From Phaeosaccion multiseriatum (Eukaryota; Protista; Ochrophyta, other classes): a stretch of DNA of 64,000 nt. The notes beneath the pieces were generated by a model, which saw nothing but the letters and a program-made list of their open reading frames with translations, ran no database searches and had not been told where the DNA came from. The stretch is from NCBI GenBank assembly GCA_965112735.1, contig OZ218953.1, positions 1,178,001 through 1,242,000 of the forward strand. The letters run 5' to 3'. Position numbers and translations under genes: made by a program. This document shows positions 12,951 through 46,977 of this stretch, one piece after another. The first letter of the stretch is position 1; every line of letters starts with the position of its first letter.

Positions 12951-13188
12951 GGGAGGGTGGGGGAGGGCGCAAACTCATTCATGTGTCCTCCCCTTTCTCT
13001 AGGAAGCAAAACGTGTGAAGTGCTCCAACACTTCGTCTCTTCCATTTTAATAAAAGAATAGCATTCTTTTTTTTGAGAAAACTTGGATTAACTTAAGAAT
13101 GCATGTTTCGCCAATATGGAATACAATTCAATGGGGCCATTGGCTCGACCGTCAAGGAAAGGTTTGTGGGCTTCAAGGTGAGCCCGCT

Positions 13189-14299
13189 TCAGTTACTCCC
13201 GCTGCCGCTGCCGCTGCCGCTGCCGCTCCCACTCGAGGACGAGTACTTCTTGGGGGGAATAACTGGGTCGGAGTAGACAGGCTGCCGAGAGAGAAGGACG
13301 AGGAGGAGGCGGGTTGGTGTGAGGACAGTGACGAGGAGAATGGAGGCAGCACAATAACGAGGACAATGGAGGTCCGACTTCACTCCCTTTCCCTCTTACC
13401 TTGTGATGGATCACCACGGGATACGGCTAAGCAGAAGAAGCGTTGGGAGCAAGTTGAGTGTGTGAAGTAAGAGAACAGAGGAGCATTATAGAGCAAGAGA
13501 GCAGTTTACAAGGATAGAAGCTCACCTTGTAGCGTGTGAACTCGGGGTAGTGTCCACCCTTGGTCTTCTTGTACTTCGAGGCCCCGTAGTAGCCCTTGCC
13601 GTATCCGCCCCAGCCACCATAGCCTCCGCGGCTCCCAGATCCGGATCCGCTGCCTGACGCAGAGCCAGAGCCAGAGCCAGAGCCAGAGCTGGACTTGCCT
13701 CCGTACCACTTGTGGTGATAGACAGGGTAGTGGACTGTCTTGAGGAAGTAGGGGGCGTGCTGGTGAACGACGCCCGGCCCCCCGCCGTAACCGCCAAGCT
13801 GTCGGTGCCCGGAGCCGCTGCCGCTCGAGGAGGAGTACTTCTTGGGGGGAATAACTGGGTCGGAGTAGACAGGCTGCCGAGAGAGAGGGGATGAGGCGGA
13901 GCGGGTTGGTGTGAGTGCGGGGACGACGGTGAGGAGGAGAATGGAGGATAACGAGGGCGATGGAGGTCCGACTTCACTCCCTCTCCCTCTCTTACCTTGT
14001 GATGGATCACCACGGGATACGGCTAGGCAGAAGAAGCGTTGAGCGAGAGGGATCACGGGAGCAAATGACAAGAGAGTGAGGCGAGTGAGTGAAGTAAGAG
14101 AACAGAGGAGCATTATAGGGTAGAAGCTCACACAGAGGCGCATTATAGGGTAGAAGCTCACACCTTGTAGCGTGTGAACTCGGGGTAATGTCCACCCTTG
14201 GTCTTCTTGTACTTCGAGGCCCCGTAGCCCCTGCCGTATCCGCCCCAGCCACCATAGCCTCCGCGGCTCCCAGATCCGGATCCGCTGCCTGACGCAGAG

Positions 14300-14330
<31 letters not shown>

Positions 14331-14535
14331 TGGACTTGCCTCCGTACCACTTATGGTGATAGACAGGGTAGTGGACTGTCTTGAGGAAGTAGGGGGCGTG
14401 CTGGTGAACAACGCCCGGCCCGCCGCCGTACCCGGCGGGCAGCTTACGGGGGACGAGCTTCTGCTCCTCCTGCGCCTCCCCGGCGCAGAGGCCCACGAGG
14501 GCCAGGATGGTGGTGGTGAAGGCGGCGAGCTTCAT
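13189..14535 (-). CDS. A1: secreted two-module Tyr/His/Lys/Ser/Gly-rich protein with RXL motifs (silaffin/cingulin-like), ~288 aa
   Basis: Exons 14535-14164, 14022-13996 (27-bp microexon PYPVVIHHK), 13873-13526, 13426-13400 and 13281-13189, all phase 0 with GT-AG. Signal-like MKLAAFTTTILALVGLCAG, propeptide EAQEEQKLVPRKL, internal HRQL. Confidence 0.85.
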
Positions 14536-14658
14536 GGCTAGATGAAAGTTGTGAGCGTGGGGCTCTCCCTCCCGGGCGTGTCATAGAAGCATGCCCTTGA
14601 CATGCAAAATGAGCTCCTGGAAATGAAGCCCGTTTTGAATCACTATTCAAACTCTCCC

Positions 14659-14666
14659 TTTTTATA
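14659..14666 (-). promoter_or_regulatory. Candidate TATA box of A1
   Basis: TATAAAAA about 125 bp upstream of the ATG, conserved at the equivalent position for A2 (19010-19017, -) and A3 (45457-45464, +). Confidence 0.4.
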
Positions 14667-16237
14667 CTTCGTTGAAGGCGAGAGAACACTTTGTGCTATT
14701 CCCCACGTCATTGGCCCTTTCTTCGTTGGAGAGCAGCAGCCTGCGTGCTGGACAAACCGCCGCCACAGTCCCCACACCTCTTCACCGGCTCACGCCTTGT
14801 AGCGAGAAAGTACAAGCATGCCTGCCACTAGGTTGGAGGTCATCGCTCGGATAGGAGCGACACCGAGGCTGAGCGAGAGCCAAGGGGATCGTCAAGAAGC
14901 CCTTGGGGCGGGCGGGCTGGGTAGACGAATGGTACCACGAGAGGAGGAGTTCGGCAGACGGCATGGCCTACCAATCAAGCTTTCTGTTGGCACGAGGGAC
15001 GTAGAGCAGCCTAGTGGGAAATGCGGAGAGCAGTGCCATCTCTCTATACGGCTTAATGGCGTTCTTCCACTTGTGGTAAAATGTCAATGCAAGACCGACC
15101 AATCCATCGCGACGCGAGCTGCTCCTCCTGTGTCATGCTCTTTCGTCAGACATGCCGCCGCCTGAGGCGGACATTCCAGCCCTACGGGGGGCGATCAACG
15201 GCAGTCTCGGCTTCAATACTTGTATACTCGCGCGAAGTGCCAGTTTTGGGTCTGTGCATTGGTGCTCTCCCCCATCCCCTCAAAAGAGCAGGCTACTATT
15301 CATGCTGCACAGATGGCGAAGTTGAAGAAGAAGGTCCCCCGTCCCGACCCTTGTGCGTCTGACGGAAGGTCGAGTCTCTGCTCCTGATGCAGACTGTTGC
15401 AGACTCTTGCAGGTCCAAGCGCCCCAACGCGAGTCAGCGCCTTGCCCACACACACCTTGCCCACCCACGCCCTGCCTACAGCAGCTTGTGCCTCGCATCC
15501 CCGCAACAGTGCTATGCCGGTGATCCCTTAGAGCAGGAGATGCAACACCTGTCCATGCCCGCCTTTCCCAGCAAGGGGCAGAGCGACTCGACAGAGGGTC
15601 AGGCCGTCATGCCGATGTGCCTCTACGCCTGCTCACGAAGACCTGCCGCATGTGCCTTCTGTGTGGCCCCAAAGAGGCGATCTCTCTTCCAAAACCATAC
15701 TGGAAGTGCTCACTTCTGCAGTGCGCGAAGCCGATGCTAAGAAGCGAGCGAGTGTTGCGTGCAGTCAAGGTGCCGGCAAAAACTCGAGAGCGAAAGCCCA
15801 ACAGCTCTTATCGGGAAACAATGAAGTACCTTCGTTGCTGCAAGGAATTGCTCGCCCCACTCTTCGTCCTGCGCAAAGATCCTCCTCTCCATGGGGGATG
15901 TTCGCCATAGTGCACACTTTCCCCCCTGCAGTGGCACTCCCGCGGTGGACAAGCTTCCTCCGCTTCCTAAGCTGCTACTGCAGCCTGTGGTATGGATGTT
16001 CTCTCTGTTGCCATCATGACGAAGGGGAGCTGCGCAGGGAGAGCGATGCTCGCGGAGAGAGCAGATACCGGGAGGGGAAGTGGGCGTGGAAGAGGCCCAA
16101 TCTGGAGCAGCAAAAAGGGTTCCTTGGAAATGTGCTCTGGTAAATGGCGCTTGACACCTCGCCACACAAGCCCCCTCTCTGCTCACAATCACTCTTCCCC
16201 TGCAAGCAACCACCCCCAAAACCAACCCACACTCAAG

Positions 16238-17011
16238 ATGCAGGTTCTCCAAGTGCTCATGGCCCTCGCAGCCGCCCTCGCTTTTGCCACCAGCGCCAGC
16301 GTGCCCATTACGGACGCCGCCACTGCGGAAGAGACCAACCAACGCGAGCTGTAAGTGGTCCTCAAGGCGCGTCGTTTCTGCTTTTTTGCGTCTCTTAGAA
16401 CCGTGCCGCTCCTCCTTTTCATTGCTGTTGGCCTCGATTCTCACGTTGAGTGCGTCCCTCGCCTTTCGTCCCGTGTCTCATGCTGCACTCGTAGTCACTA
16501 TGGACGCAGCTCATCGGGCTCCAAGTCTTACGGCAGGGGCTGGGGCCGCGGCTACGGCAGGGGCTGGGGCCACGGCTACGGCAGGGGCTGGGGCTCCTCG
16601 CTCTCCTCCTCGGGCTCCAAGTCTTCCTCGGGTGGACGCTTCTATGGCAGGGGCTGGGGCCACGGCTACGGCAGGGGCTGGGGCTCCTCGCTCTCCGCCT
16701 CGGGATCCAAGTCTTCTTCAGGATCCAAGTCCTCGGGTAGTGGACACTTCTACGGCAGGGGCTGGGGCTCCTCCTCCTCCAAGTCTTCCTCGGGTAGCTC
16801 AGGCTCCTCCTCGGGCTCCAAGTCTTCCTCGGGTAGCTCGGGCTCCTCCTCCTCCAAGTCTTCATCCTCCAAGTCTTCCTCGGGATCCTCCTCCTCCAAG
16901 TCTTCCTCGGGTAGCTCAGGCTCCTCCTCGGGCTCCAAATCTTCCTCGGGTAGCTCATCCTCCAAGTCTTCCTCGGGTAGCTCAGGCTCCTCCTCCAAGG
17001 GTGCATGGTAA
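16238..17011 (+). CDS. B1: secreted Trp/Tyr/Arg-Gly repeat plus Ser/Lys-rich protein with REL propeptide, ~209 aa
   Basis: Exon 1 16238-16350 (MQVLQVLMALAAALAFATSASVPITDAATAEETNQREL), GTAAGT..TAG intron, exon 2 16495-17011 (six YGRGWG units, SSKSSSG repeats, ends KGAW*). Confidence 0.85.
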
Positions 17012-17477
17012 AGAGACCAGGACAGGACTACGAGTAAGCGAGCAGCACATGCACCTCGCGTAACGATTGAATGAAACGATTTAAGCCACGCTTCTTCTGC
17101 CCCCCTTCGCAACCTTGTCATATAAACTCTGCGATGCACTCTGCGATGCACCTCCGTCCTTTCGCGTCGTTTGCGATGCTCTCGCAGTTTGAGATGCACC
17201 TTCTCGCTTGCTTCGCGTCAAGCAGCAGCGGTGACTCTCCCTACGTAAGCCCCCGCTCTCCATTCTCTTTAGCAACCAAACCCTTGAGCTTCTCAGGAAG
17301 TCATGGAGTCCTAGACCTTGACGGAAGCCAACAGCGCGTGTGCATGGAAACTTCGTGGTGTGTCAAAATTGTTTCGATTAACTTAAAATGCAAGTTTCGC
17401 CAATATGGAATACAATTCAATGCGGCCATTGGCTCGACCGTCAAGGAAAGGTTTGTGGGCTTCAAGGTGAGCCCGCT

Positions 17478-18005
17478 TCAGTTACTCCCGCTGCCGCTGC
17501 CGCTGTCGCTGCCGCTGCCGCTGTCGCTGCCGCTGTCGCTCCCGCTCGAGGACGAGTACTTCTTGGGGGGAATAACTGGGTCGGAGTAGACAGGCTGCCG
17601 AGAGAGAAGGACGAGGAGGAGGCGGGTTGGTGTGAGGACAGTGACGAGGAGAATGGACGCAGGACAAGAACGAGGACAATGGAGGTCCGACTTCACTCCC
17701 TTTCTATCTCACCTTGTGATGGATCACCACGGGATACGGCTGAGCAGAAGAAGCGTTGAGCGAGAGGGATCACGGGAGCAAGACAAGAGAGTGGGGCGAG
17801 TGAGTGAAGCAAGAGAAAGGAAGGGAGAAGAGAGCAAGAGAGTAGCTAACAAGGGTAGAAGCTCACCTTGTAGCGTGTGAACTCGGGGTAATGTCCACCC
17901 TTGGTCTTCTTGTACTTCGAGGCCCCGTAATAGCCCTTGCCGTATCCGCCCCAGCCGCCATAGCCTCCGCGGCTCCCAGATCCGGATCCGCTGCCTGACG
18001 CAGAG

Positions 18006-18042
<37 letters not shown>

Positions 18043-18881
18043 TGGACTTTCCTCCGTACCACTTGTGGTGATAGACAGGGTAGTGGACTGTCTTGAGGAA
18101 GTAGGGGGCATGCTGGTGAACTACGCCCGGCCCGCCGTATTTCCCGCCAAGCTGTCGGCGCCCGGAGCCGCTGCCGCTCGAGGAGGAGTACTTCTTGGGG
18201 GGGATGACAGGGTCGGAGTAGACAGGCTGGCGAGAGAGAGTGGACGAGGCGGGTGCGAGTTGATGTGGGTACGGGGAGGACAGTGACGAGTGACAATGGA
18301 GGCAGGACAATAACGAGGGCAATGGAGGTCCGACGTCGCTCCCTTTCCCTCTCTTACCTTGTGATGGATCACCACGGGATACGGCTAAGCAGAAGAAGCG
18401 TTGAGCGAGAGGGATCACGGAAGCAAGTGACACAGAGAGTGAGGCGAGTGAGTGAAGTAAGAGAACAGAGGAGCATTATAGAGCAAGAGAGCAGTTTACA
18501 AGGGTAGAAGCTCACCTTGTAGCGTGTGAACTCGGGGTAATGTCCCCCCTTGGTCTTCTTGTACTTCGAGGCCCCGTAGTAGCCCTTGCCGTATCCGCCC
18601 CAGCCACCATAGCCTCCGCGGCTCCCAGATCCGGATCCGCTGCCTGACGCAGAGCCAGAGCCAGAGCCAGAGCCAGAGCTGGACTTTCCTCCGTACCACT
18701 TGTGGTGATAGACAGGGTAGTGGACTGTCTTGAGGAAGTAGGGGGCGTGCTGGTGAACGACGCCCGGCCCGCCGTATTTGCCGCCCAGCTTACGGGGGAC
18801 GAGCTTCTGCTCCTCCTGCGCCTCCCCGGCGCAGAGGCCCACGAGGGCCAGGATGGTGGTGGTGAAGGCGGCGAGCTTCAT
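17478..18881 (-). CDS. A2: paralog of A1, ~298 aa
   Basis: Exons 18881-18516, 18384-18358, 18226-17867, 17739-17713 and 17594-17478; motifs VPRKL and GRRQL. Confidence 0.85.
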
Positions 18882-20615
18882 GGCTAGATGAAAGTTGTGA
18901 GTGTGGGGCTCTCCCTCCCAGGCCGTGTGTCATAGAACCATGCCCTTGACATGCAAAAATGAGCTCCTGGAAAAGGAACCCTTTTTGAATCACTATTCAA
19001 CACTCTCCCTTTTTATACTTCGTTGAAGGCGAGAGAACATCGTTGGCCTTTTCTTCGTTGGAGAGCAGCAGCCTGCGTGCTGGACAAACCGCCGCCACAG
19101 TCCCCACACCTCTTCACCGGCTCACTTGCTTGAGTAGCGTCTGCAGTGGACGACGAAGATCCAAACGAGCTCAGGCCTTGTGGCGAGAAAGTACAAGCAT
19201 GCCTGCCACTAGGTTGGAGGTCATCACTCGGACAGGAGCGGCACCGAGGCTGAGCGAGAGCCAAGGGGATCGTCAAGAAGCCCTTGGGGCGGGCGGGCTG
19301 GGTAGACGCATGGTACCACGAGAGGAGGAGTTCGGCAGACGGCATGTCCTACCAATCGAGCTTTCTGTTGGCACGAGGGACGTAGAGCAGCCGAGTGGGA
19401 AATGCGGAGAGCGGTGCCATCTCTCTATACGGCTTCATGGCGTTCTTCCACTTGTGGTAAAATGTCAATACAAGACCGACCAATCCATCGCGACGCGAGC
19501 TGCTCCTCCTGTGTCATGCTCTTTCGTCAGACATGCCGCCGCCTGAGGCGGACATTCCAGCCCTACGGGGGGCGATCAACGGCAGTCTCGGCTTCAATAC
19601 TTGTATACTCGCGCGAAGTGCCAGTTTTGGGTCTGTGCATTGGTGCTCTCCCCCCCCCCCCTCAAAAGAGCAGGCTACTATTCCTGCTGCACAGATGGCG
19701 AAGTTGAGGAAGAAGGTCCCCCGTCCCGACCCTTGTGCGTCTGACGGAAGGTCGAGCCTCTGCTGCTGATGCAGACTGTTGCAGACTCTTGCACGTCCAA
19801 GCGCCCCAACGCGAGTCAGCGCCTTGCCCACACACACCTTGCCCACCCACGCCCTGCCCACACCAGCTTGTGCCTCGCATCCCCGTGACAGCGCTATGCC
19901 GGTGATCCCTTAGAGCAGGAGATGCAACACATGTCCAAGCCCGCCTTTCCCAGCAAGGGGCAGAGCGACTCGACAGAGGGTCAGGCCGTCATGCCGATGT
20001 GCCTCTGCGCCTGCTCACGAAGACCTGCCGCATGTGCCTTCTGTGTGGCCCCAAAGAGGCGATCTCTCTTCCAAAACCATACTGGAAGTGGCTTCTGCAG
20101 TGCGCGAAGCCGATGCTAAGAAGCGAGCGAGTGTTGCGTGCAGTCAAGGTGCCGGCAAGAACTCGAGAGCGAAAGCCCAACAGCTTATCGGGAAGCAATG
20201 AAGTACCTTCGTTGCTGCAAGGAATTGCTCGCCCCACTCTTCGTCCTGCGCAAAGATCCTCCTCTCCATGGGGGATGTTCGCCATAGTGCACACTTTCCC
20301 CCCTGCAGTGGCACTCCCGCGGTGGACAAGCTTCCTCCGCTTCCTAAGCTACTACTGCAGCCTGTGGTATGGATGTTCTCTCTGTTGCCATCATGACGAA
20401 GGGGAGCTGCGCAAGGACAGCGATGCTCGCGGAGAGAGCAGATACCGGGAGGGGAAGTGGGTGTGGAAGAGGCCCAATCTGGAGCAGCAAAAAGGGTTCC
20501 TTGGAAATGTGCTCTGGTAAAATGGCGCTTGACACCTCGCCACACAAGCCCCCTCTCAGCTCACAATCACTCTTCCCCTGCAAGCAACCACCCCTAAGAC
20601 CAACCCACTCTCAAG

Positions 20616-21295
20616 ATGCAGGTTCTCCAAGTGCTCATGGCCCTCGCAGCCGCCCTCGCTTTTGCCACCAGCGCCAGCGTGCCCATTACGGACGCCGCCA
20701 CTGCGGAAGACACCAACCAACGCGAGCTGTAAGTGGTCCTCAAGGCGCGTCGTTTCTGCTTTTTTGCGTCTCTTAGAACCGTGCCGCTCCTCCTTTCATT
20801 GCTGTTGGCCTCGATTCTCACGTTGAGTGCGTCCCTCGTCTGTCGTCCCGTGTCTCATGCTGCACTCGTAGTCACTATGGACGCAGCTCATCGGGCTCCA
20901 AGTCATACGGCAGGGGCTGGGGCCGCGGCTACGGCAGGGGCTGGGGCCACGGCTACGGCAGGGGCTGGGGCTCCTCGCTCTCCTCCTCGGGCTCCAAGTC
21001 TTCCTCGGGTGGACGCTTCTATGGCAGGGGCTGGGGCCACGGCTACGGCAGGGGCTGGGGCTCCTCGCTCTCCGCCTCGGGATCCAAGTCTTCTTCAGGA
21101 TCCAAGTCCTCGGGTAGTGGACACTTCTACGGCAGGGGCTGGGGCTCCTCCTCCTCCAAGTCTTCCTCGGGTAGCTCAGGCTCCTCCTCGGGCTCCAAGT
21201 CTTCCTCGGGTAGCTCGGGCTCCTCCTCCTCCAAGTCTTCATCCTCCAAGTCTTCCTCGAGTAGCTCGGGCTCCTCCTCCAAGGGTGCATGGTAA
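20616..21295 (+). CDS. B2: paralog of B1 with a shorter Ser/Lys tail, ~178 aa
   Basis: Exons 20616-20728 and 20872-21295, same intron position, ends KGAW-TAA. Confidence 0.85.
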
Positions 21296-21767
21296 AGAGA
21301 CCAGGACAGGACTCCGAGTAAGCGAGCAGCACATGCACCTCGCGTAACGATTCAATGAAACGATCTGCCCCCTCCGCGGCCATGGCCATAGAAGTCCTTT
21401 GCGAGCACCGCCGTCCTTTCGTGTCGTTTGTCGCAGTTTGAGATGCACCTTCTGGCTTGCTTCGCGTCACAAATCAGCAGCGGTTATTCTCCCTACGACG
21501 TGTAAGCCCCCGCTCTCCATTCTCTTGGCAACCAACCCCTTGTGCTTGTGGAGTCCTGACCTTGACGAAGCAGCTGAGCAGACAGAGCATCACGTGGGCC
21601 TGGAGACTTCAAGTGATGAGACTTGCAGCGTGATGTGTCAAAACTGTTTGATTTTAAAGTGACTCGGTTACGTTACTCGGTGGTTGCCTTGCTTGATTAA
21701 GTTACTTGGTGTTTGCCAGTATGTAGTAGCCACTCGCGAGACTTGTGATACGGAAAGGGTGCGGGCT

Positions 21768-22677
21768 TCAGTTTGAGCCACTGTTGGAAGCAGAGCTGCC
21801 GGATGACGAGGACGAGTCGCCGGAAGAAGAGTACTTCTTGGGGGCGATGACGTGGTCACTGTAGACAGGCCAATGATTCACTTGGACTTTGTATGGCTGA
21901 GGGAGGGTGAGAGAGGCCAACAGCGGCGCGTGGGTGTGCGTGCAGAAATCAGAGATCAACCGCAAGCCGAATAGCGGTTCGGATGGAGAGGAACGAGCCG
22001 CCAAAATCAATGAAGAGGAGCAAAGTCAAGCCCTCTCTCACTCTCTTTAGCTCCCCCCCTCACCTTGTAGCGAGTGAACTCAGGGTAGTGCCCGCCTTTC
22101 GTCTTCTTGTAGCGAGTGGCGCCGTACATGCCCCCATAGCCACTGTACCCCGAGCTTGGGCCAGAGCCAGAGGACTTCGAGCCAGAGGAGCTGGAGCCAG
22201 AGGAGCTAGAGCCACTGCTGGACTTTCCTTCATGCCACTTGTGGTGATGGACGGAGAGCATCTATATGAATACAGGGGATCAAAGGTATGCCTCCCTCCG
22301 TTCCTCCCTCGCTACCCCCCTTGACTCACCTTGTAGCGTGTGAACTCAGGGTAGTGCCCTCCCTTCGTCTTCTTGTAGTGAGAGGCGCCATAGCCACCGG
22401 AGCCCTTGGACGAGGACCCGTAGCCCTTGGAGAATCCGCTTCCTCTGCTTGACGAGGAAGAAGCGCTGCTGCCCGAGCTACTGGACTTGCCCCCGCTGTG
22501 CCACTTATGGTAATAGACTGGGTAATGCACTGTCTTGAGGTAGTAGGGGACGTGCTGGTGAACCACGCCGGGCTTGCCGCCAAGCTTGCGCGGCACGAGC
22601 TTCTGCTCCTGCTGCACCTCGCCGGTGCAGAGGCCTACGAGGGCCAGGATGGTGGCGGCAAAGGCGGTGACCTTCAT
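21768..22677 (-). CDS. C1: diverged A-type paralog with an internal ~325-bp deletion; intact via cryptic splicing, or a pseudogene
   Basis: Exon 1 22677-22330 (MKVTAFAATILALVGLCTGEVQQEQKLVPRKL...), exon 2 remnant 22261-22064, exon 3 21896-21768. The normal exon-2 acceptor seen in C2 is missing. Confidence 0.65.
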
Positions 22678-24396
22678 GGCTGGCAAGTATGCAAAAGAAG
22701 TGGTTGTGGCTTCGCCTGCATCTCCCCTCAAGCCGTGTCACCAAATGCTAGAGCCGTGATGTGCAGAACAGACCCCCGTTCCCTCCGAAGAACCCTTTTG
22801 ATCGTACCACCAACAGCTTTTCCCCAGGAAGATCGCTCACCCATAATAACCTCTTCACTGGAAGACTGTGGCCGTACCAGCGTGTGCGGTCGATAACGAA
22901 GATCCATACGAGCTCGGGCCCCGTAGCGACAAAGTACAGGCGCGCCTCGCAACTGTGTTGGAAGCTGAAAAGAGGGAGCTTGCCGCGGCGACAGTACCGA
23001 GGGCTCCCAGAGAGCCAGTCAAGGAAGGCATCAACAGAGGCAGGCGAGCGGAACGCTTGGGGCGGCTAGGGCTGGGTAGACGGTTAGCATCACTAGAAGG
23101 GCGATACACGATCAGAGAAGGGGGTCGGCTGACGAGTCCAGCTATTCTGTGGGCACGAGGACAGTCTGAGGGAGGCGAGTTCTTGGGAGGATTTGGGGGA
23201 TGTGCAGCAGCCGAGCGGGAGATAAGGAGGACGGTGCCATCTCTCGATCGCTCTCACAAGCTCTATTCCACTACTCGTGAAACGTCAATGCAACACATCA
23301 AGGAAACATCGCAATGCGAACTGCTGCTCCTATATTTCACCCTTCGCCAGACATTCCCTGCCTCACTTGGGCATCCCAGCCCTCAGTCCTCAGCTTTCAG
23401 CTAATGAAGTCGCGCGTCTCATGAGTAGCTTGGGCGCAAGGTGCAGTTGTGGGTGTGGCATTTGTGCTCGCTCTCCCTCCAAAGAGCCAGGTTTGCTGTC
23501 CGAGCAACACCGCTTTGGCTGCTGCACGGGCATGTTGAGGGCGGGCGTCCCCCGACCCTTCCCTGTGACGGTAGCCTCAGCCTCGGCTGCTGCTGAGGCT
23601 AATCTTCTCCTACAAATAGAGCTCCACCATTTGGGAATACCAACGGGGGGTGCGCGCCCTGCACGGAACATTCTGGGACGAACTGGCAGGAAGCAAGTCG
23701 CGAGGTGGGCAGAGAGCAGTGGAGGGTTCGCTCTCCCCGCTCCTCAGAGCGCTGGCCACCGCTGTCCCGTCCCTGTAGTCTCCTCCTGGATACACTCCTT
23801 TCTTCCAGCTCGCAGACACGCCCCCCCCCCTCTGAGCTACAGAATGCGCAGATCCACATAGCCTACAACTGTACCGTCGCACCGAGAAGGGCGCGAGTGT
23901 TGCGGTGAGCTGCTGGCGTGTACGCATAACAGCTTCTCGCGTGCAGTAGAGGCCCCTCCAGGGGCGCTGAGCCTTCCAATGTGCCCCCCCAGCACCGCAC
24001 AAGGGCCGGGCCGAAAGAGGGGAGCGGCTGCTGCTGCGGGTATGATGACCACGTGGCGTGGGCTCACAGAGGCTCAACGCCACAGCAGATGGCCGCAACA
24101 CACCACGCGGGGCCATATGCCTCGGAAGGAATGCACGCTGCGTTGTCCGCGTTGCCCAGCAGCCTCAGCGGCCACCTCAACAGCAAAGCTCGCGACGAGG
24201 ACGACGACGACGACAAGGAGGAGGAGGGGGAGGAGGAGGAGGAGGAGGAGGAGGAGGAGGAGGAGGGCAGGACTGACGGGCACGTCCAACCCCCCCTCCT
24301 CACATACCAAGCCCATCACGACCATCCTTGGACCCTCCCTCTCTCTGCACGCCCTCGTCCGCCATTGTCTACATGCAGGTCTATGACGCGCCGAGC

Positions 24397-30334: not shown

Positions 30335-32289
30335 ATGGCCAAAGGTGTTTCGCCATACGCCCCTGCCTCGCGCAAGAAGAAGTCACGACAGGACAAAGGC
30401 TTGAGGAGGGCGAAACGAAAGGGCCAGAAGGAGGGGAGGGAGGTGGGTGGGGATGGGGGCAAAGCAAATCCCACACTGAGCCAGCAGGGGGGCGAGAGAG
30501 AGGAAGACGGCAACGGCACCACCAGAAAGAGGAGCCGAAGCCCAAGTCTGGACAGGGGCGTGCCTGCCACGTCCGTGGAGGAAAAGAGTAGGCAGAAGCC
30601 TACTACCCTGCCCTCTGTCGGCCAGCCAACGTACCAGCGGTACATCTATGAGAAGCCGGCGACCAGGAAGCGGGGAAGGGGGGATGGCAGCGTTGCATCC
30701 TCGAACGTATCGTTCGCTGGGCGGCGCAGAAGTCGACTGAGCGGCGCCATCGATGACTACTTTTCCCTCCGGTCAACTGCACGCAAAACGCAGCTCCACT
30801 ACCTTGCTCGCGCCGACAAGATGAAGGTGACTAAGCTACTTCACGTACTGGCCGATGCCCTCATGGGGAATAGCAGCACGACTCGAAGGAGGCTGGTGGA
30901 CCTGTTTCCGAAGGTAGGCTGCTGCTGTCGGCTTGGCTCCAACGTGTACAGCCCCTGATGAGCTAGCTGTAAACGCAACACATTTCGACTCTTGACTTGG
31001 AGGTGGAGAGGTGGAGAGGTGGAGAGGTGGAGTGGTGGACTGAAGGACCGCGTTGTTCCACATCCCTTCCCCCCCACCCCCTCTCTTCAGCCTGCAGAGC
31101 TCTCGTTCCCTGCTCTGACTGTGACCTGAATCAAAGACGTGGCATAGGTTTCTCCTCATACCACGCTACCCTACCCTCGTTTCCTCCTCGACTGCTGCTG
31201 CAGGGAGATCGCATCGACAAACACGACCTTACGGCAACGCTGAAGAAGCACGGCGTTGAGACGACCGACAAGCAGCTCGGCCTGCTCATCGCCTTCCTCA
31301 GCCAAGACCGGGACCTGGGAGACCTGGAGACCGAAAGCAGGGGAGCGAGCAGAGTGGGAAGTAGAGCGGGAAGTAGAGCGGGAAGCAGAAGCGGAAGCAG
31401 AGGAGGAAGCAGATCGAACGGTATCACCGTCAGCCGAGCGGAGCTAGGTGAGCAAAATCGATCCGACTCTCTCTCTCCCTCTCTCACACACACATGCACA
31501 CACTCAACCCGAGGATGGCTGATGTCGAAGCTTCGCTCGACTGTCTATGTGCACCCATCTCACCCCACCGCACCCCACCGCACAGGCCGAGCCATCAAGG
31601 TGTTCCGAATGCTGCAGGGCCTGGAGGACGAGGCGGCGCCATTTGCAAGTGCAAGGAGTAGGAAGGGTGGCTCGGGCTGCAGCGGAAAAAGCAGCAGCAG
31701 TGTCGTGTACGCTGCCAGTGAGCTAAGCCTCCTCCCCCACAACCACAGTCACATCCACGGCCGGCAGTGTCAGAGCCAGAGCCAGTGTCAGAGCCAACTG
31801 AAGCCGCTTCACCGCGCGCTACTGCAGCCCATTCTGCTGAGAAGCAGTGCCAAAATGGCAGCCACGGCCACGGCGGTGGCTGCGCACTCGGCCCAAGCTG
31901 CCGCAGAACAAGAGGGACGCCAAATAGGAGGGTTGGAGCAACAGCAGGATAAGCATGAGGAGCAGCAGCAGGGGAAAGATGAGGATTCGCAGAAAAGGCT
32001 CGATACTTCTTCTTCGTCTTCCCGGACACTGAGTGTGGCGCCCTCCACCGACAAGACACTCAAGCTGCAGCCCCACAAAGGCGGCTCCGGCCTCGTGACC
32101 ATGCACAACGGCCGCCGCACCAAGAGCTACGTGCCTGGTCACCTTCTGTATAGGCGGCAGGACCGAGGAGAAGCCTATCGTCACCGGCACCCTTCCTCCG
32201 ACCTTTACGCGCCCCTCTCGCTCACTCCGCGGGAGAGAGACGCCCTCCTCGTCTTTTTCTCCTCCTTGGTATCAAACAGCATAAAGCCC

Positions 32290-32344
<55 letters not shown>

Positions 32345-34392
32345 CTGGAGAAGGTCGAGAGAGGCGTGGCGGAAACCAGGAGGAGGATGAGGAGGGCGAG
32401 GGTGGGGAAGAGGACGGAGCCGGAGTTTTCACTCTGTCGCTGTTTATGGGGGAGCTGCGTGCAATGCTGGCCACAGCAGGGGATGGAGATGGGCAGAGTC
32501 ATGCCGCAGAGAGGGAGGCAGGAAGTGGTGACGGAGGTGGCGGAGGTGGGGGTGGAGAAGGAGGGAAAGCAGCAGCAGCAGCGACAGCAACAGCAACAAA
32601 AGGAGGGAAGCCAGCAGCAGCAACAGCAGCAGCGGGCGAGGGGGATCGGGTGACTCTCGAACGCGCAGCCAAGAAGCTCTGTGAGGCGGTGCACGCGTTG
32701 GAGGTGGCGTGGGGAGGAGGTGACGCGGGGGGCAAGGCGGGTGCATCCAAGGCGAGGAGGAGAGAGGGAACTCCGGGGCAGTGTGGGAGCAGCGGCAGCG
32801 GCAGAACAAGCACAAAGGGGGGGCTGCAGAAAGATGACAAAAAGAGGAAACAATCGCATGGAGAGGCAGGGGAGCTGTATGCCGCCCTGGAGAGACAGCT
32901 ACCGCAGCACCATCGCAAGCCGCTCAAGTCGCCTCTCACGCGGCTCAGCGAAGCCGACATTGACGCCTGCGTGCACGCGCTGTCTGCCGGAGTAACAGCT
33001 CCCTCTGTATCACCAACTGTTGCTGAGGGAAGCTGCTCCATCCGCGTGGGCGACTTTCTGGAGGTGATGGCTCTGTTCAAGCACAGCGCACACCCGTCCT
33101 CCGCCCATCCCAGGCCACGGCGGCAGGGAGGGGCGGGCGAGCTCACCTTGCTGTTACAGCTCGGTCGGCTCATGGTCAGGGAGGGCTGGTCAGGCACCGA
33201 TGTAGTTCGAGAGGCGAGGGGCAGGAAGAGGGGCGGCGTAGGTGGTGGTGACGGCAGCGGCGGACTGTCTGTGCCAGCCAAGTACATGTGGCAATGGCTG
33301 CCGCAAGTCTTACACCCCAGCTTGTCGGCACAGCAGCAGCATACATCCTCATCTTCGTCGTCTTCTCCTCCTTCCTCCTCCTCTCGCTCCCTCGGCCTCT
33401 CCAGGGAGGGTGGTAACAAGGAGGACGGGGGGGGACAACAGGCAGTGCGGCGCGCAGTGGCAGTGATGCACGGGGGAGATGCCTCTCCAGCGGGGGGAGA
33501 GGGGGCTGTGTATCCCTCGCAGGTGGAGAGCGCCATTCGCAAGGCGCGGCTCGTGGCGGGGGACGAGAGGAGAGACGCAGAGCTGGCGGAGAGGCTGCGA
33601 CAGTTGTTGGAGGAGCACCAGCACCAACACCAACAGCACCAGCACAAGCACAACAATAAGCACAAGCACAAGCCCCACGCCCAGCCCAAGCAGCTCAAGC
33701 AATCAAAGCAGCGGCGAGGATCCGCAGGAGTTGGTGATCCAGAAGCAACAGGAGCGGGGCTTGAAAGACAACAGCAGCCCTTCTGCGAGTCGGATGTGGA
33801 GGTCCTGCTTGCCTTCGTTACTGACCCTGCGGGCGCCCACAGCAGCAGCAGCAGCAGCAGCGCCAGCAGCACTACGGTGACGGGTACTGCTCCCCCTCCC
33901 GGTGGTGGGCAGCTGAGCACCGCGCAGGTGCTGGCCAGGGTCAAGGTGTTCCGCCTCTGGACGCAGAGCAGGCCGCGATTCGCGTGGAGTCCATCACCAA
34001 GCACTGGCGTTGCAAACTGCTCCTCCGTCATCACCACCACGGGCGCAGTAGTTGCCGTCACGTGCCCTGCGATACCCGCTCTTCCAGCGGCTCTTCCGGT
34101 GGCTCTTCCGGCGATGTCGGCTGGCCCGGCTCCTGTTACTCCTGCTGCTCCTGCTGCTCCTGCTGCTGCTCGCCCCATTGTTGCCTCGCCGGTCAATGGC
34201 GCCGCTGAGATCCTCGGGAGACTGCAAGACCTCGAAGTCTGGCTCGGGGGGCTCGGCGGGCCTGGGGACTTTGGGAGCGTACAGGGAAAGGGGGTCAGGC
34301 CACTCGGCTTCCTCGACCGGCGCACTCTGCTCGCAGGGCTGAGCGACATACTCAAGCTGCCAGAGGCGCGCCGGCTGAGGAGAGCTATAAAG

Positions 34393-34451
<59 letters not shown>

Positions 34452-37400
34452 CGGGGATGAGGGAAGGGGAGGAGCGGGCGGGGCAAGCGATGACGCCTTA
34501 GGTGGGGAAGATTCTGACGGAGCGTGTTGCAGCACATCCACACATGTGGAGTCAGCAGAGCCCCGCCACTGCCACGGACAAGGAGAGTCGCTCTCGTGTC
34601 TTGCTTGGGTGGGAGCGCGGGAGAAGAAGAGGCCCCGACTGAGAGTCGAGCGCATTATCCGTGACGGGGGCAACGTTGGTGATACAGCACATGTAAGCGA
34701 CGACTCGGACGCGCCTGTCGTGGACGCAATGCCTCTGCAGGCCTTTCTGAAGCATGCCCGGAGCGACATTCGGGCCGTCGCAGCCACTGCAGCCGCCGCA
34801 GCAGCTGATGAGAAAGCCGCGACAAGAACGACACCGAGCAACTGCAGCAGCAACAACAACAACAGGAGGAGTAACCGTAGCAGCCGGTGCAAGGGCGAGG
34901 AGGTGGGGCGAGCGCTGGACTGGACGCTCTGTGCCTTCCTTATGGACCTCACTTGCCTCCAAAGAGCACTGGCCCGCCTCGTGCCTCCCCCCAAGGTGCC
35001 TTTGCGAGTCTATCTGCCCGGTGTGGGGTGGGAGCACCCGCCCATGCGGCCCCACCACACAACGGCTGCGGAGGATTGGGCGGACGGTAAGGGCTGTAAT
35101 GCCGCGCATATGAAGCTCGTGCAGGCCTTCTCCCGGTTGGACTTGACCTTGGCGCAGCGCGGAGGGAGGAGGGTCAGCGACGTACTGCACGCCGTGGAGA
35201 GCAGCCAGGGCCACTACTGCGAGGGTAAGTGTGGCTTTCTACTCTGTCTTTCTTCTCTTCTATCGCACTACGAAGTACTATGCCTTCGAAGAAGTGACTG
35301 CAAATGCCCGAGAGGCAGACTACCACTCTCAGTGCGTAACGTCTGGCCGGCGCCCTGGCGCCCTCCCCGTCTTCGTCTTCACGTCTCTTCAGTTGCTGCA
35401 CGTTAGTCTCTCTGTTGTTTCCTTGTGCTTTTCTTATTAACCCCGCGCTTGTACTTCCTTGCCCCCCTCGCACGCACGCACACATAGATTTACGGAAGGA
35501 GCTACTGAAGCTCACCGCCTCCCCGGGGGGGCGAGGCGGGGCTGAGCCTGACACAGCAGAGGACAGCAGCTTGGGCGGATCGCATGAGGCAGTGCCTGCT
35601 GTTGCTGGCACCACTCCCGAGGGAAGCTACGACTGCTCCTCCTCATCTCTCATCAGCGGTATTCGAAAGGAGGTGCGAGCAAGCGACGCTCCTTGCGTGT
35701 GTCACATCCCTCAAGCACACCTGCACTTGCATACTTACTTACGTACTTAACTTACATGCTTGCTTACTTACTCGTATTTCCGGTCTGTCTCACCTGTCGA
35801 ACGAATGATATGATTCCGCGGTATTGGCTCCTGCCGCAGATGGAGAGTCGCAGTCGGGCTCGGCAGACGGCTGAGCTGACGCTTCAATGGGCGATCAGCC
35901 TGGAAAGAAAGCAGAGTAGTAACATCGGCAGCAGCAGCAGCAGCAACAGCAAGAGCAGCAGTACCACGAGCACACCAGCGGCCAAGTTCCGGGCGGTAGT
36001 AGCTCGAGCCCAGGAGCTCGGGGTGAGGCTGGAGGACATTGCCGCCGAGGCATTGGGGCTAGCCTATATGACTGTGGATGACCTGCAGGAGGAGGAGGGG
36101 AGCCGTCGGTCGGCAGCACTCCAAGAGAAGGTAGGAGGGGTCGGCTCCTCCTCCTCTCTCTCGGACTGTGCGTCCGCCGTGGGCGTTGTGCAAGGCCCGC
36201 AAGGGGAAGGGGGAATGGCAGCAGACGGAGGAGCGCAGCGGTGGCTCGACGCACGGCTGCTGCAGAGGGCTATGAGCAGGAGGCTGCTGCCTCAAAAGGA
36301 GAGGGATGGAAGTGGAGGAGGAGGAGGAGGAGGAGGAGGAGGAGGAGAGCTGGACAGAGGCACCACCGCTGACCAGCAGGACAGAGTCAGGGCACAGGCG
36401 GCGGAGGAGGCGGCCGCAACAAGGGCCAAGAAGCAGTGTGCAAGACACATGCTGGTGCAGAGGGAGATGGCGGAGCGACTGCGCTTCGACCAAATGATGA
36501 GGGTGTGCCACATTGGGGGGGGCAGGGGAGAGGCCCAAGCTGTGATGGAAGGGTTGGCAGCGGCGGCCTACCCGGGGGGGCGGCGGCGGGCAGCGGCAGT
36601 CATGGCCAAGAGGCAAGTAGACGCTGCTGCCATATCACCAACTACTGCGGGTGCTGGAAAGAGGGAAAGAGTGGACATTCTCGCCCTGCTGGGTGTGGGG
36701 ACGGAGGGGGCAGGCGGCGATAACGATGCGCGGGTGGGGGCCCAAGAGCTGCAAGGGGCGCTGCAGCGGGGGCTCGGGCTCCACGTGAGCGTAGGAGCAG
36801 TGGAGCTACTCTACGAAGCGCTGGCATTCTCAGACAGCAGCCCCTCTGCTGCTGCTGTATCACCAATTGCTGTACCACCCACGGCGGCTCAGCTCGACGA
36901 GGCGGTGTACATTTGGGTCCAATTCAGCCCCAAGAGGCAACAGATCAACCTGGAGCGACTCACCCGGCCGCTGCACCATCAATTTGTTGACATGGGACGC
37001 ATCTTCCAGAGCGTAGAGGACAGGTACGACCCCTGCGTTGTGCGTCACCAGTGGAGGCAGCTTGCAGTCCTGCAGCAGCGGCGAGGCAAGGAGGAGGAAA
37101 GAGTGTGCGAGTCTGCAACGGGCAAGGAGGAGGATACACGAGCAGGAGAAGACGCCTCCTCGCTGAGGAAAGATGTGATCCTGACGAAGCAAGGCCTGGA
37201 GGTGGGGCTACTTCGGCTCTGCGGACAGGGGGGGCTCGCCAACCTGACCACTCGGCAGCGAGCGGGCTTGAGGCAGGCGCTGAGTAAGCTCGGTATGTAC
37301 TGCATGTTGGGTCAGCTCACCTCGGAAGGAAGGCTCGAGGCGGCGCTGCGGGCGTGCAATTTCTCACTCAAGGGAATCGAAACGACTTCGATTCCCCGGT

Positions 37401-40400
37401 GGGGGTTGAAGGGGTGGCTGCTGCAGCTGGAAGATCCGGATGGGGTGATCGGAGAGGCAGCTAGGTCCAGTGGGGTGGATAGAGAGGAAGGGGGGGAGGA
37501 GGAGGGGAAGAAGGAGGGGGAGAAAGAGAAGGAGAAGGAGGCGAAGTCGGAGGCGGAGAAGCCAGATGATTGGCTTGTTACGGAGAAAAAGCGTCAGCTG
37601 GAGGTGCGGGAGACTCTATCGAGTCTTCTGCATGAGGAAGAGGACGGCGCGCCTGCAGAGGGCCTTGCCGGCGATAAGGCGAAGGACGGTAGAGCTGGCG
37701 GGGTTGGCGTGGACTGGGTGGTGGAGCCCGAGGAGAAGCAGCGGCAATTGGCGATACAGCACACGCTGACGAACCTCCTGGTGGGTGATGATGTTGATGG
37801 TGATGATGAAAGGAAGGAGGAGGAGGAAGGAGAGGGGAAGGAGGGCAAAGGAATCGGGAAGAAGAAAGCCGCAGCAGAAGCAGCAGCTTGTGCCAGCGAT
37901 GGCAAGAACGACGACAAGGTCAAGGTGCTCAAGGGGAGGAGGAGGTGCAAGGGAGACCAGAGAGACCAGAGACAAGGCCTGCTGCTCACGAGGCTCGAAG
38001 TGCTCCTCATTCTCGGCTCTGTGCGCCGCGCCAGTACCGCGGAGAACAACGCGGCCCTAAACCTGCTCTGTGTGACGGCGTTGTGGGATCGGATGGTCGA
38101 GAGTTGCGAGGCTCTCAAGATGGCAGCGGACGCGTTTGAAACCGCCTCGTGCAAGAGGATGGAGCAGGAGCTGGAGGAGAAGCTGGCGGAGGCTCTGGTG
38201 CACCAACACACCACTGCTTCTACCGTCTCTTCCGTCTCTTCTGTCTCCGCCGTCTCCTCCGTCTGCTACTCCTCTTCTTCCTCCTCCTCCTCCTCCTCTT
38301 CCTCCGCCTCCTCCCCCTCCCGCACGCCACGGGTGTTATCAACACCATCGCTTCACGGCGACTCGAGCGTCGCTCCCGCGGGAGGTGATGACTGGCAGCA
38401 GCGATGGAGGCGAGTAGAAGATGACGCCGCCGTCGCAATTCAGGCCCTGGTGCGGAAGCAGCAAGCCGTGCGCACTTACAAATACATGCAGCAGCACCAG
38501 GACGGGGCGGTCGTCAACGTTCAGAGGCAGGTTCGGGTGCGGGAAGCACGAAGGCCGCTGCAGGGAAAGACGCAACAGGAGGAAGCAGCAGTAGCTATCC
38601 AGGGTATTGTTCGGAAACGGGAGGCACACAAAGTGTTGAAGGAGAAGAGGGAGCAGAAGGACGCGGCAGTGGCCATCCAGGGTATTGCTCGACGCAGGCA
38701 GGCTGGGAAGAATGTGCAGGAGAGGAGGCGACAGAATGATGCGGCAGTCGCTATCCAGGGCATCGCTCGGCACAGGCACGCAAAGAAGGCCCTGGAGCAG
38801 AAGAGGCAGCAGAAGGAAGCGGCTGTGGCCATTCAAGGCATTGCTCGACGAAAATACGCGAAGAAGACTCTGCAGGAGAAGAGGCGGCAGAGGGAAGCGG
38901 CCATGGCTATCCAGGGCATTGTAAGAAAAAGGGCTCGAAACGCGCTGCAGTACAAGGCGGGGAAAGAAAATGACAGAAAGAAGCAGATGCAGCAGCAGCA
39001 GCAGCAAGCGGAGGAGGAGCAGCAGCAAGTGGAAGGGGGTGAGGAGGAAAGGGCGGCTGTGGCTATCCAGGGCATCGCCCGATGCAGGCACGCAAAGAAG
39101 GCTCTGGAGCAAAAGAGGCAGCGGAAAGAAGCGGCTGTGGCCATTCAAGGAATTGCTCGACGAAACCACGCAAAGAAGACTCTGGAGGAGAGGAGGAAGC
39201 AGAGGGAAGCGGCAGTCGCTATCCAGGGCATTGCTCGACGCAAACACGCGCGGAGCGTTGTGCGCGAGCGGAGAAACAAGAGCAATAGAGTTCCCCTAGA
39301 GCAGCAGCGTGCGACGCAGTCAGGCAGCGATATGATTGGGACGAGGGGGGAGGAGGTGGAGGAGAAGGCCGCCGATCCACGTGCCTCTGGGGTGGCGGGC
39401 GTATTCAGTGCCGCAAAGCGATTGAGCAAGGGGGTGGAGCGGACCGCCCTGAAGACCCTCGGGGGCATCCGTCGGCAGAGAGCGAGAGTGGGCGACAGCA
39501 AGGCGGATGCTGCTGATGCTGCTGCTGCTGCTGCCTTTTCAGCGGCTTCAGATGCCCATCCGGGGACCCAATCAAGCGCAGCCACTCGCATTCAGGCCGT
39601 GCAGCGACGCCGGGCGGCACGCCTGAAGACCAACGCGAGAAGGCAGCAGAGGGCGGCTGCCAACCTCCAGCAGAAGACGGCGAGGAAATCAAAGATCATG
39701 GGGGAGATACGCGTTGAGCAGCGCAAGCAAGAGGATCTCCTGGAGGAGGCAAAGGCCTCTGCAGCCGTCCTTATGCAGAAGGGTGAGTGAGTGAGTGAGT
39801 GCGTGCGTGTGAGTGTGTGTGACTGCATGAGTACGTCATGTGAGAGTGCGAGGATACCTGCAAATGCAAATCTCTAAAATGAGGGCCTCTGGGTTGGCTC
39901 CGCACGCTCCGTCAAGCAGTTGAACTGTCGCTAGTAGGCTCCCATATTGGAAGCGATGCCATAGAGATTTGCGGTGTTAGGACAAGCTCATGTCTGCCCC
40001 CCTCATTCCTGTTGTGCTTGGCCTCGAGCCTTTCCCCTCTTGATACCGGCAAGTACTAACGCCAAGTCTTTGGCCCGACTGCACCTCTTGTCGTGTGGAA
40101 ACCGTCTCAGCCTTCCGCGGGCACCGCGAGCGAGTGTCTGCTCCAGCTCGGCGGGAAGCAGTTCGAAAGCGGCGTCTGATGTTTGAGCGAGGTCTGAATG
40201 ATGGTACAATCATCGTTGCAGAAACACCTGGTCAAGAGGAGATACTGATGCTTGGCGAAAAAGCAGGAGAAGGATGGGCCAGAGACGAGAGGCGCGAAGA
40301 TTTCCTCCGAGGTGTGAGAGGGAGCAGGAAGATTCATCGCCAGATTGCACACGAGCAGAGCATGTGGGATGATCGGGACGAAGATAAAAGAGGCGAGAGC

Positions 40401-41336: not shown

Positions 41337-42580
41337 ATGAAGGTCACCGCCTTTGCCGCCACCATCCTGGCCCTCGTAGGCCTCTGCACCGGCGAGGTGC
41401 AGGAGGAGCAGAAGCTCGTGCCGCGCAAGCTTGGCGGCAAGCTCAGCGGGCCCGGCGTGGTTCACCAGCACGCCCCCTACTACCTCAAGACAGTGCATTA
41501 CCCAGTGTATTACCATAAGTGGCACAGCGGGGGCAAGTCCAGTGGCTCGGGCAGCAGCGCGTCTTCCTCGTCAAGCAGAGGAAGCGGATTCTCCAAGGGC
41601 TACGGGTCCTCGTCCAAGGGCTCCAGTGGCTATGGCGCCTCTCACTACAAGAAGACGAAGGGAGGGCACTACCCTGAGTTCACACGCTACAAGGTGAGTC
41701 GAGGGGGGTGGCGAGGGAGGGACGGAGGGAGGCATAGCTTTGATCCCCTGTGTTCATATAGATGCTCTCTGGCTCACGCTGCTGCTCGCCACTGCGTCTT
41801 GCCTCTCTCTTTCTCTCTCTCTTTGTGTCTTTTATCTCTCTCTCTTTGCGTCTCTTTCGTTCTCTTTTTTGTCTCTCTCTCTCTCTCTCTCCCTCGCTCT
41901 CCCTCTCTCTCTCAGCCGTACAAAGTCCAGATAAATCATTGGCCTGTGTACAGTGACCACGTTATCGCTCCGAAGAAGTACTCCTCTTCCAGCGACTCGT
42001 CCTCATCATCCGGCCGCCAGCTTGGCGCCAAGTCCAGCGGACCGGGCATCGTTCACCAACATGCCCCGTACTACCTCAAGACAGTGCATTACCCCGTCTA
42101 TCACCACAAGTGGCATGAAGGAAAGTCCAGCAGTGGCTCTAGCTCCTCTGGCTCGAAGTCCTCCGGCTCTAGCTCCTCTGGCTCTGGCCCAAGCTCGGGG
42201 TACAGTGGCTACGGGGGCATGTACGGCGCCACTCGCTACAAGAAGACGAAAGGCGGGCACTACCCTGAGTTCACTCGCTACAAGGTGAGGGGGGGAGCTA
42301 AAGAGAGTGAGAGAGGGCTTGACTTTGCTCCTCTTCATTGATTTTGGCGGCTCGTTCCTCTCCATCCGAAGCGCTCTTCGGCCTGCGGTTGATCTCTGAT
42401 TTCTGCACGCACACCCACGCGCCACTGTTGGCCTCTCTCACCCTCCCTCAGCCATACAAAGTCCAAGTGAATCATTGGCCTGTCTACAGTGACCACGTCA
42501 TCGCCCCCAAGAAGTACTCTTCTTCCGGCGACTCGTCCTCGTCATCCGGCAGCTCTGCTTCCGACAGTGGCTCAAACTGA
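41337..42580 (+). CDS. C2: intact diverged A-type secreted two-module RXL protein, ~284 aa
   Basis: Exons 41337-41693, 41916-42284 and 42452-42580; motifs VPRKL and SGRQL; ends SGSN*. Confidence 0.85.
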
Positions 42581-45587: not shown

Positions 45588-45789
45588 ATGAAGCTCGCTG
45601 CCTTCACCACCACCATCCTGGCCCTCGTGGGCCTCTGCGCCGGGGAGGCGCAGGAGGAGCAGAAGCTCGTCCCCCGTAAGCTGGGCGGCAAATACGGCGG
45701 GCCGGGCGTCGTTCACCAGCACGCCCCCTACTTCCTCAAGACAGTCCACTACCCTGTCTATCACCATAAGTGGTACGGAGGCAAGTCCA

Positions 45790-45826
<37 letters not shown>

Positions 45827-46977
45827 CTCTGCGTCAGGCAGCGGATCCGGATCTGGGAGCCGCGGAGGCTATGGTGGCTGGGGCGGATACGGCAAGGGCT
45901 ACTACGGGGCCTCGAAGTACAAGAAGACCAAGGGTGGACATTACCCCGAGTTCACACGCTACAAGGTGTGAGCTTCTTCTTCTACCCTATAATGCGCCTC
46001 TGTGTGAGCTTCTACCCTATAATGCTCCTCTGTTCTCTTACTTCACTCACTCGCCTCACTCTCTTGTCATTTGCTTCCGTGATCCCTCTCGCTCAACGCT
46101 TCTTCTGCTTAGCCGTATCCCGTGGTGATCCATCACAAGGTAAGAGAGGGAGAGGGAGTGACGTCGGACCTCCATTGCCTTCGTTATTGTCCTGCCTCCA
46201 TTGTCACTCGTCACTGTCCTCCCCGCACTCACATCAACTCGCACCCGCCTCGTCCACTCTCTCTCGCCAGCCTGTCTACTCCGACCCTGTCATCCCCCCC
46301 AAGAAGTACTCCTCCTCGAGCGGCAGCGGCTCCGGGCGCCGACAGCTTGGCGGGAAGGGGCCGGGCGTAGTTCACCAGCATGCCCCCTACTTCCTCAAGA
46401 CAGTCCACTACCCTGTCTATCACCACAAGTGGTACGGAGGAAAGTCCAGTTCTGGCTCTGGCTCTGGCTCTGGCTCTGCGTCAGGCAGCGGATCCGGATC
46501 TGGGAGCGGCGGAGGCTATGGTGGCTGGGGCGGATACGGCAAGGGCTACTACGGGGCCTCGAAGTACAAGAAGACCAAGGGTGGACATTACCCCGAGTTC
46601 ACACGCTACAAGGTGAGCTTCTACCCTTGTTAACTACTCTCTTGCTCTCTTGTCACATCTATTCTCTTGCTTCACTCACTCACCCCACTCTCTTGTATTG
46701 CTCCCGTGATCCCTCTCGCTCAACGCTTCTTCTGCTCAGCCGTATCCCGTGGTGATCCATCACAAGGTAAGAGGGAAAGGGAGTGAAGTCGGACGTCCAT
46801 TGTCCTCGTTATTGTCCTGCCTCCATTCTCCTCGTCACTGTCCTCACACCAACCCGCCTCCTCCTCGTCCTTCTCTCTCGGCAGCCTGTCTACTCCGACC
46901 CAGTGATTCCCCCCAAGAAGTACTCGTCCTCGAGTGGGAGCGACAGCGGCAGCGGCAGCGACAGCGGGAGTAACTGA
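45588..46977 (+). CDS. A3: A-type secreted protein, ~288 aa
   Basis: Exons 45588-45965, 46113-46139, 46271-46612, 46740-46766 and 46885-46977. Confidence 0.85.

Follow-up and report, generated by a model that had tools for sequence, protein, structure and literature searches.

The A1 gene of Phaeosaccion multiseriatum and its close paralogues appear to have been built by doubling a whole genomic cassette that consists of a large exon, an intron, a 27-bp microexon and a second intron. This origin, proposed in the initial annotation, is supported by the fact that the introns align along with the exons. On balance we consider it probable that A1 and its paralogues form a lineage-restricted family of real protein-coding genes that are spliced, and that their disordered, secreted, two-module product undergoes RXL-type maturation. 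The window (the whole stretch of 64,000 nucleotides that was analysed) is eukaryotic, with around 59% G+C and short GT..AG introns. The two cassettes of A1 can be aligned over their full length, through the introns as well, with identities of 95% in the large exon, 81% in intron 1/3, 100% in the microexon, 87% in intron 2/4 and 88% in the tail. Across the five A genes (A1-A5) the identity between cassette 1 and cassette 2 amounts to 95-98% for the large exon, 76-89% for intron 1/3 and 82-89% for intron 2/4, which confirms the reported homology of these two intron pairs. For the microexon it is 96-100%, with identical copies in four of the five genes and 26 of 27 positions shared in A5. The window contains six exact copies of the 27-mer (two per gene, in three genes), where none would be expected.

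The five exons of A1 (Table 1) encode, in this order, a signal peptide, an acidic pro-piece that ends in RKL, module 1, RQL and module 2. A large exon, an intron, a microexon and an intron are indeed read twice per gene, and the corresponding five-exon model holds for all five A genes. As claimed earlier, all introns of A1 are in phase 0 (4/4, all GT..AG). The two modules are 127 and 129 amino acids long and near-identical, in agreement with the anticipated 125-130 residues. Modules and exons are out of register: RQL lies 26 codons into exon 3, away from any exon border. Reading through intron 1 leads to an immediate TGA, and reading through introns 2 and 4 shifts the frame. Since the length of intron 2 (122 bp) is not a multiple of three, splicing is needed to hold the conserved PVYSD… frame.

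Table 1. Positions of the A genes, of the elements of A1 and of the B genes (window coordinates, unless a locus or contig is given).
Feature	Position	Strand	Description
A1 gene, ATG to TGA	13189..14535	-	5 exons, 288 codons (sum of per-exon counts)
A1 exon 1	14164..14535	-	372 bp, 124 codons
A1 predicted signal peptide	14479..14535	-	residues 1-19, ending in …CAG before E; sequence and hydropathy scan
A1 acidic pro-piece	14440..14478	-	13 aa, EAQEEQKLVPRKL, RKL end at 14448-14440; conserved in 7/7 copies
A1 intron 1	14023..14163	-	141 bp, GT..AG, phase 0
A1 microexon 1	13996..14022	-	27 bp, PYPVVIHHK
A1 intron 2	13874..13995	-	122 bp, GT..AG, phase 0
A1 exon 3	13526..13873	-	348 bp, 116 codons; module 1 tail, RQL and module 2 core
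A1 RQL	13804-13796	-	inside exon 3
A1 intron 3	13427..13525	-	99 bp, GT..AG, phase 0; homologous to intron 1
A1 microexon 2	13400..13426	-	27 bp, same 27 nt as microexon 1
A1 intron 4	13282..13399	-	118 bp, GT..AG, phase 0; homologous to intron 2
A1 exon 5	13189..13281	-	30 codons and TGA; module 2 tail
A1 cassette 1	13796..14439	-	644 bp; module 1 part of the exon, followed by intron 1, microexon, intron 2 and the tail with H-RQL at its end
A1 cassette 2	13192..13795	-	604 bp; module 2 part of the exon, followed by intron 3, microexon, intron 4 and the tail before the stop codon
A2	17478..18881	-	5-exon paralogue, junction RRQL; gene comparison
A3	45588..46977	+	5-exon paralogue, junction RRQL; gene comparison
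A'	41337..42580	+	divergent two-module paralogue, 2 introns only, RKL and RQL kept; gene comparison
A''	21768..22677	-	A'-like copy, deletion from inside intron 1 to middle of module 2; gene comparison
B gene	16238-17011	+	sequence similarity
B gene	~20616-21400	+	sequence similarity
B gene	~43000-43700	-	sequence similarity
B gene	~47450-47920	-	sequence similarity
Further B-like gene beyond A5	L005:794-913		
B-like gene ~38 kb upstream of window	C4:1139756-1140022		

In an ML tree of the cassettes, the second cassettes of A1-A5 all fall in one clade (100/100), and given this monophyly the internal duplication predates the expansion to five genes. The two cassettes of A' pair with each other in the same tree. 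Both A and A' have RKL ahead of module 1 and RQL between the modules, i.e. the same K-to-Q difference, and the R and L codons of these motifs show synonymous changes only. Considering that this difference is shared although the A' cassettes group together, we favour an ancestor that already had two modules, with concerted evolution afterwards in the A and in the A' lineage; separate duplications in A and in A' seem less likely on these data. The junction codons (C/H/R-CGA-CAG-CTT) are similar to the P-R-K-L codons (CCC-CGT-AAG-CTG), so that the duplicated unit seems to start at the cleavage motif of the pro-piece, and this similarity suggests that RQL is a duplicated copy of the RKL codons. 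The mirroring of RKL by RQL that had been pointed out before was therefore supported at the level of the DNA, with both motifs also kept in A'.

We propose that the two-module form goes back to a single tandem duplication, in which a genomic cassette of around 600 bp, starting at the P-R-K-L codons, was doubled. The doubled unit would have carried the large exon, the intron, the (micro)exon and the tail, and the event would have taken place before the multiplication of the five A genes and probably before the split between A and A'. The extra intron that isolates the 27-bp microexon in the A lineage may have been gained and then spread between the cassettes by gene conversion, or may have been lost in A'. 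An introner origin of this intron was rejected, as the sequence is not dispersed: intron 2 had matches only in the five A genes, in their 10 cassettes.

On comparative evidence the microexons, predicted by the initial annotation, appear to be genuine coding exons: they form a conserved island between variable introns and have an in-frame, fused counterpart in A'. GT and AG delimit 20 of the 20 introns of the five A genes. From A1 to A5, the lengths of the exons differ by multiples of three only (372/366/378/366/396, 348/360/342/342/336 and 93/117/93/99/75 for exons 1, 3 and 5), and those of introns 1 to 4 vary without such a rule (141/131/147/110/111, 122/131/131/128/131, 99/127/127/103/118 and 118/118/118/119/104). 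Over the 10 cassette copies only 1 of the 27 microexon columns is variable, versus 71% of the columns in intron A and 54% in intron B (Fisher 1e-11 and 3e-7, respectively), and the edges of the conserved island are exactly AG and GT. A microexon is defined as an exon of at most 30 nt that lies between canonical introns and is included in the mRNA; with its 27 nt the candidate lies within this size limit, and it combines AG/GT borders with a fused homologue in A'. In the latter, the counterpart PYKVQINHW continues in frame into PVYSDHVIAPKKY…; as A' runs it directly into the next exon, the nine residues are coding. Exon skipping that alters the number of modules, as suggested earlier, is formally possible since every intron is in phase 0; all six intact genes (6/6) possess exactly two modules.

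Given how precisely the near-invariant block of 27 nt fits between AG and GT amid introns of such variability, and given the presence of the homologous nine residues within an ordinary exon of A', we consider it very unlikely that the microexons are unused (with exons 1, 3 and 5 joined directly to one another, also in phase 0), or that the A genes are unexpressed recent duplicates. It is true that the frame would be preserved if the microexons were skipped and that the A copies are 84-99% identical, so that their conservation may partly reflect youth or gene conversion; indeed, the apparent conservation is inflated by gene conversion among the copies. Against this reading nevertheless stands a dN/dS below 0.4 (0.24-0.39) at a dS of around 1 (0.65-1.0) between A and A', a comparison that shows purifying selection on the two. 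Within these proteins, A and A' have the YKKTKGGHYPEFTRYK block in identical form, and the GPG(V/I)VHQHAPY(F/Y)LKTVHYPVY block is conserved between them apart from a single V/I and a single F/Y substitution.

The family comprises the seven copies found (A1-A5, A' and A''), located in two clusters on one chromosome (contig 4 only). A1-A3 lie in the window, and A4 and A5 around 430 kb away (locus L001). Intron 1 of A' (41694-41915) has a length of 222 bp, a multiple of three, and is free of stop codons, so that a 352-aa open frame passes through it. It is CT-rich, has GT..AG borders and matches intron 1 of the A genes in its position, hence it is clearly intronic, and gene callers that are blind to introns would mis-annotate it. 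In A'', an AG (…TCATATAG) just before the deletion junction would serve as an in-frame acceptor; the product would then contain around 1.5 modules, without the RQL junction, and a pseudogene is equally possible. Beyond the coding sequence, the five A genes share 97% identity over the 89 nt that follow the stop codon. The element TATAAAAA, found at 14660-14668 on the reverse strand, is located 131-136 nt upstream of the ATG in A1-A3 and was not found upstream of A4 and A5 (~160-180 nt examined) or A' (~240 nt).

A Ser-rich B gene adjoins each of the genes A1-A5, with A1 and B1 arranged head-to-head. The B protein has a signal peptide and an acidic piece with an REL end (residues 36-38), of which the Leu codon is split by an intron. 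The mature part consists for 48% of Ser and for 25% of Gly and contains GRGWG/GHGYG and KSSSGS repeats. The A/B/A'' block (13000-22700) and the A'/B/A/B block (41300-48000) have the layout of a large inverted segmental duplication, with unrelated long ORFs in between (30997-39790). One of these (35693-39790, forward strand, 1365 aa) holds 78-bp tandem repeats (38576-39249) that encode IQ-motif-like units (…AIQGIARKRQAKK…); a Pfam search with this ORF gave no matches at 1e-5. Another ORF (56343-56573, forward strand) opens with a signal-peptide-like stretch, shows REL at residues 36-38 and enters a 40-bp tandem repeat (56498-56718; 5.5 copies, 97% identical). It may represent a further secreted repetitive RXL gene.

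The modules of A1 are rich in Gly (24-26%), Ser (17-19%), Tyr (11-12%), Lys (around 9%), Pro (8-9%) and His (6-7%; all summed from per-exon counts), and are strongly basic (14-15 K+R versus 2 D+E), without Cys or Met. AlphaFold2, run on the module alignment, yielded a mean pLDDT of 52.8, a pTM of 0.12 and no secondary structure, and the modules are predicted to be intrinsically disordered. The N-terminus has a hydrophobic core, small residues ahead of its predicted cut and no acidic residue among the first 18 amino acids, judged by sequence, and from it we infer that the A proteins are secreted. They would function as extracellular structural, matrix or adhesive proteins; the most likely role, we infer, is that of a secreted, disordered matrix or adhesive component that works together with B.

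The A family is an orphan, without a relative among the databases searched. In Pfam, each exon taken alone gave nothing above the gathering score, and sub-threshold low-complexity matches to CFAP143 and Serglycin only. A word search with exon 3, scored in its stop-free 307-aa frame so that full-length relatives remained eligible, gave zero matches, the candidate list probably having been filled by Ser-Gly words. A profile of 8 module sequences matched none of 1.84 billion representative proteins, and nothing was found in metagenome contigs with patterns derived from the profile and the exact 27-mer. Prokaryote genome contigs contained no relatives and a literature search for the peptide motifs found none. 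In the ESM Atlas only weak compositional look-alikes were recovered, namely Gly-rich cuticle proteins of arthropods (up to 0.82).

To our knowledge, the RXL-processed matrix proteins known so far all stem from silicifying diatoms. Many diatom biosilica proteins typically carry an RXL domain behind their signal peptide (PMC5525289, PMC5501833). Silaffin precursors undergo RXL processing, and the RRIL and RRNL sequences between their repeats are removed on maturation (PMC4557024); the diatom protease has not yet been identified (PMC5525289). By analogy with diatom silaffin and cingulin precursors, the A proteins would be cut by signal peptidase and then by an RXL-type endoprotease of the secretory pathway, which would remove the pro-piece and may also cut the R-R/H-Q-L junction to yield two module peptides. 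R-x-L occurs in the A1 protein at the RKL and RQL boundaries only, each time just before the conserved GPGVVHQH block. Every copy of A, A' and A'' has RKL at residues 30-32, and the junction reads R-R-Q-L in four of the five A genes (A2-A5) and H-R-Q-L in A1. On the diatom precedent, cleavage after RKL is likely and cleavage after R-(R/H)-Q-L plausible. The polyprotein of the initial annotation, which implies internal cleavage at RQL, is on the same analogy a possibility that we would rate somewhat short of probable.

An alternative that we also take seriously, if tentatively, is that the product is a structural protein whose two modules always stay joined. Maturation would then be limited to the loss of the signal peptide and perhaps of the RKL pro-piece, RQL would be a relic of the duplication, and the modules would act as one longer disordered chain. 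The start of the duplicated unit at the P-R-K-L codons accounts for RQL by descent, and since the simplest view of RQL is that the duplication copied it from RKL, the fact that it was kept would be a weak sign of use. The fixed number of two modules fits selection on a bivalent chain. Furthermore, cleavage of the oomycete RXLR and the Plasmodium PEXEL motif takes place in the secretory pathway, directly behind the Leu, and in Phytophthora RXLR cleavage depends on a position close to the signal peptide (PMC11754927). This dependence favours the uncut chain and argues against automatic use of an internal site around 160 residues into the protein. The uncut chain is harder to reconcile with the retention of R-Q-L in both A and A' while neighbouring Ser and Gly residues diverged, and with the R-R-Q-L junction of A2-A5, which has the R-R-x-L form found between cleaved silaffin repeats (PMC4557024).

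Far less credible is the idea that A belongs to the true biosilica proteins of the silaffin or cingulin type, in a stramenopile that silicifies, and we regard it as extremely unlikely. Such a role is suggested by the succession of signal peptide, acidic pro-piece and RXL, by the basic, Ser/Gly/Lys/Tyr-rich modules and by the R-R-x-L junction (PMC4557024, PMC4220933). Silaffin-like proteins have been defined by an ER signal peptide and repeated KXXK motifs with X being S or G (PMC5501833); A1 has the former, by its sequence, and the latter is absent from A1, A' and B1, which contain KYKK and KKTK only. Precursors of biosilica proteins are further expected to carry an RXL stretch after the signal peptide, here present as RKL in A, A' and A'' and as REL in B, and to come from an organism that deposits silica and possesses silicon transporters. 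A six-frame search of the intron-rich 67-Mb genome for Silic_transp (PF03842), run without a eukaryote positive control, gave zero matches. The profile search, too, brought up no diatom relatives among the 1.84 billion representatives. The A proteins may work like silaffin-type precursors, by analogy, but fall outside that class.

Repetitive Pro/Tyr/Lys proteins of walls and adhesives are known from plants (PRPs), mussels (foot proteins) and sandcastle worms (cement). The basic, disordered A modules, rich in Tyr, Lys, Gly, His and Pro, recall these proteins and have P-x-V-Y-K-like motifs, but the resemblance is one of composition only and Pfam finds nothing in A. Oomycetes are stramenopiles. 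With RXLR and PEXEL proteins, A shares an R-x-L soon after the signal peptide (PMC11754927), but those are host-targeted effectors with an N-terminal motif, whereas the cargo of A is of a low-complexity structural type and its second site is internal. Sil1p of Cylindrotheca fusiformis (units R1-R7) likewise has a signal peptide followed by an acidic piece with an RXL end, and its basic Ser/Lys/Gly/Tyr-rich units are parted by R-R-x-L (RRIL/RRNL in Sil1p, PMC4557024; R-R-Q-L in A2-A5). There is no sequence homology between the two, however, and the modules of A measure around 128 aa versus around 19-33 aa for the units of Sil1p. In addition, the A repeat includes introns and a microexon and lacks KXXK, the cleavage that is known for the units of Sil1p has only a candidate site in A, and no silicon transporter was found in the present genome (PF03842, six-frame). 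The cingulins CinY and CinW and AC3362 of Amphora are secreted, Tyr- or Trp-rich, Lys/Ser-rich low-complexity proteins of the insoluble organic matrix (PMC4220933, PMC5501833). The pair formed by A (Y/K/H) and B (GRGWG plus Ser/Lys) echoes their split into a Y-type and a W-type, although A and B have neither homology to these proteins nor a silica context, and are putative matrix proteins. In its very high Ser content, B also resembles the polyphosphoserine component of coacervate cements (PMC4220933 mentions coacervation).

One far-reaching reading, which we offer as rather improbable, is that A and B constitute a two-component extracellular material in a non-silicifying stramenopile, with A as a polycationic Tyr/Lys/His component and B (around 48% Ser) as a polyanionic one if phosphorylated, both matured by the RXL endoprotease of diatom silaffins and cingulins. 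If true, a toolkit of RXL-processed, charge-paired matrix proteins would be older than diatom silica and would have been co-opted for it. If the RXL sites are used, silaffin-style precursor processing would reach beyond the diatoms, and a silica-free system would be at hand for finding the RXL protease (PMC5525289). As a pair, the basic Tyr/Lys protein and its Ser-rich partner are candidates for components of a natural adhesive or matrix. As to the genes themselves, the family offers a clean and datable case in which a protein module was doubled by copying genomic DNA together with its introns, and in which, between sister paralogues, a 27-bp microexon either came into being with the gain of an intron or vanished with the loss of one. 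This makes the A/A' pair useful for studies of microexon recognition and intron turnover in stramenopiles.
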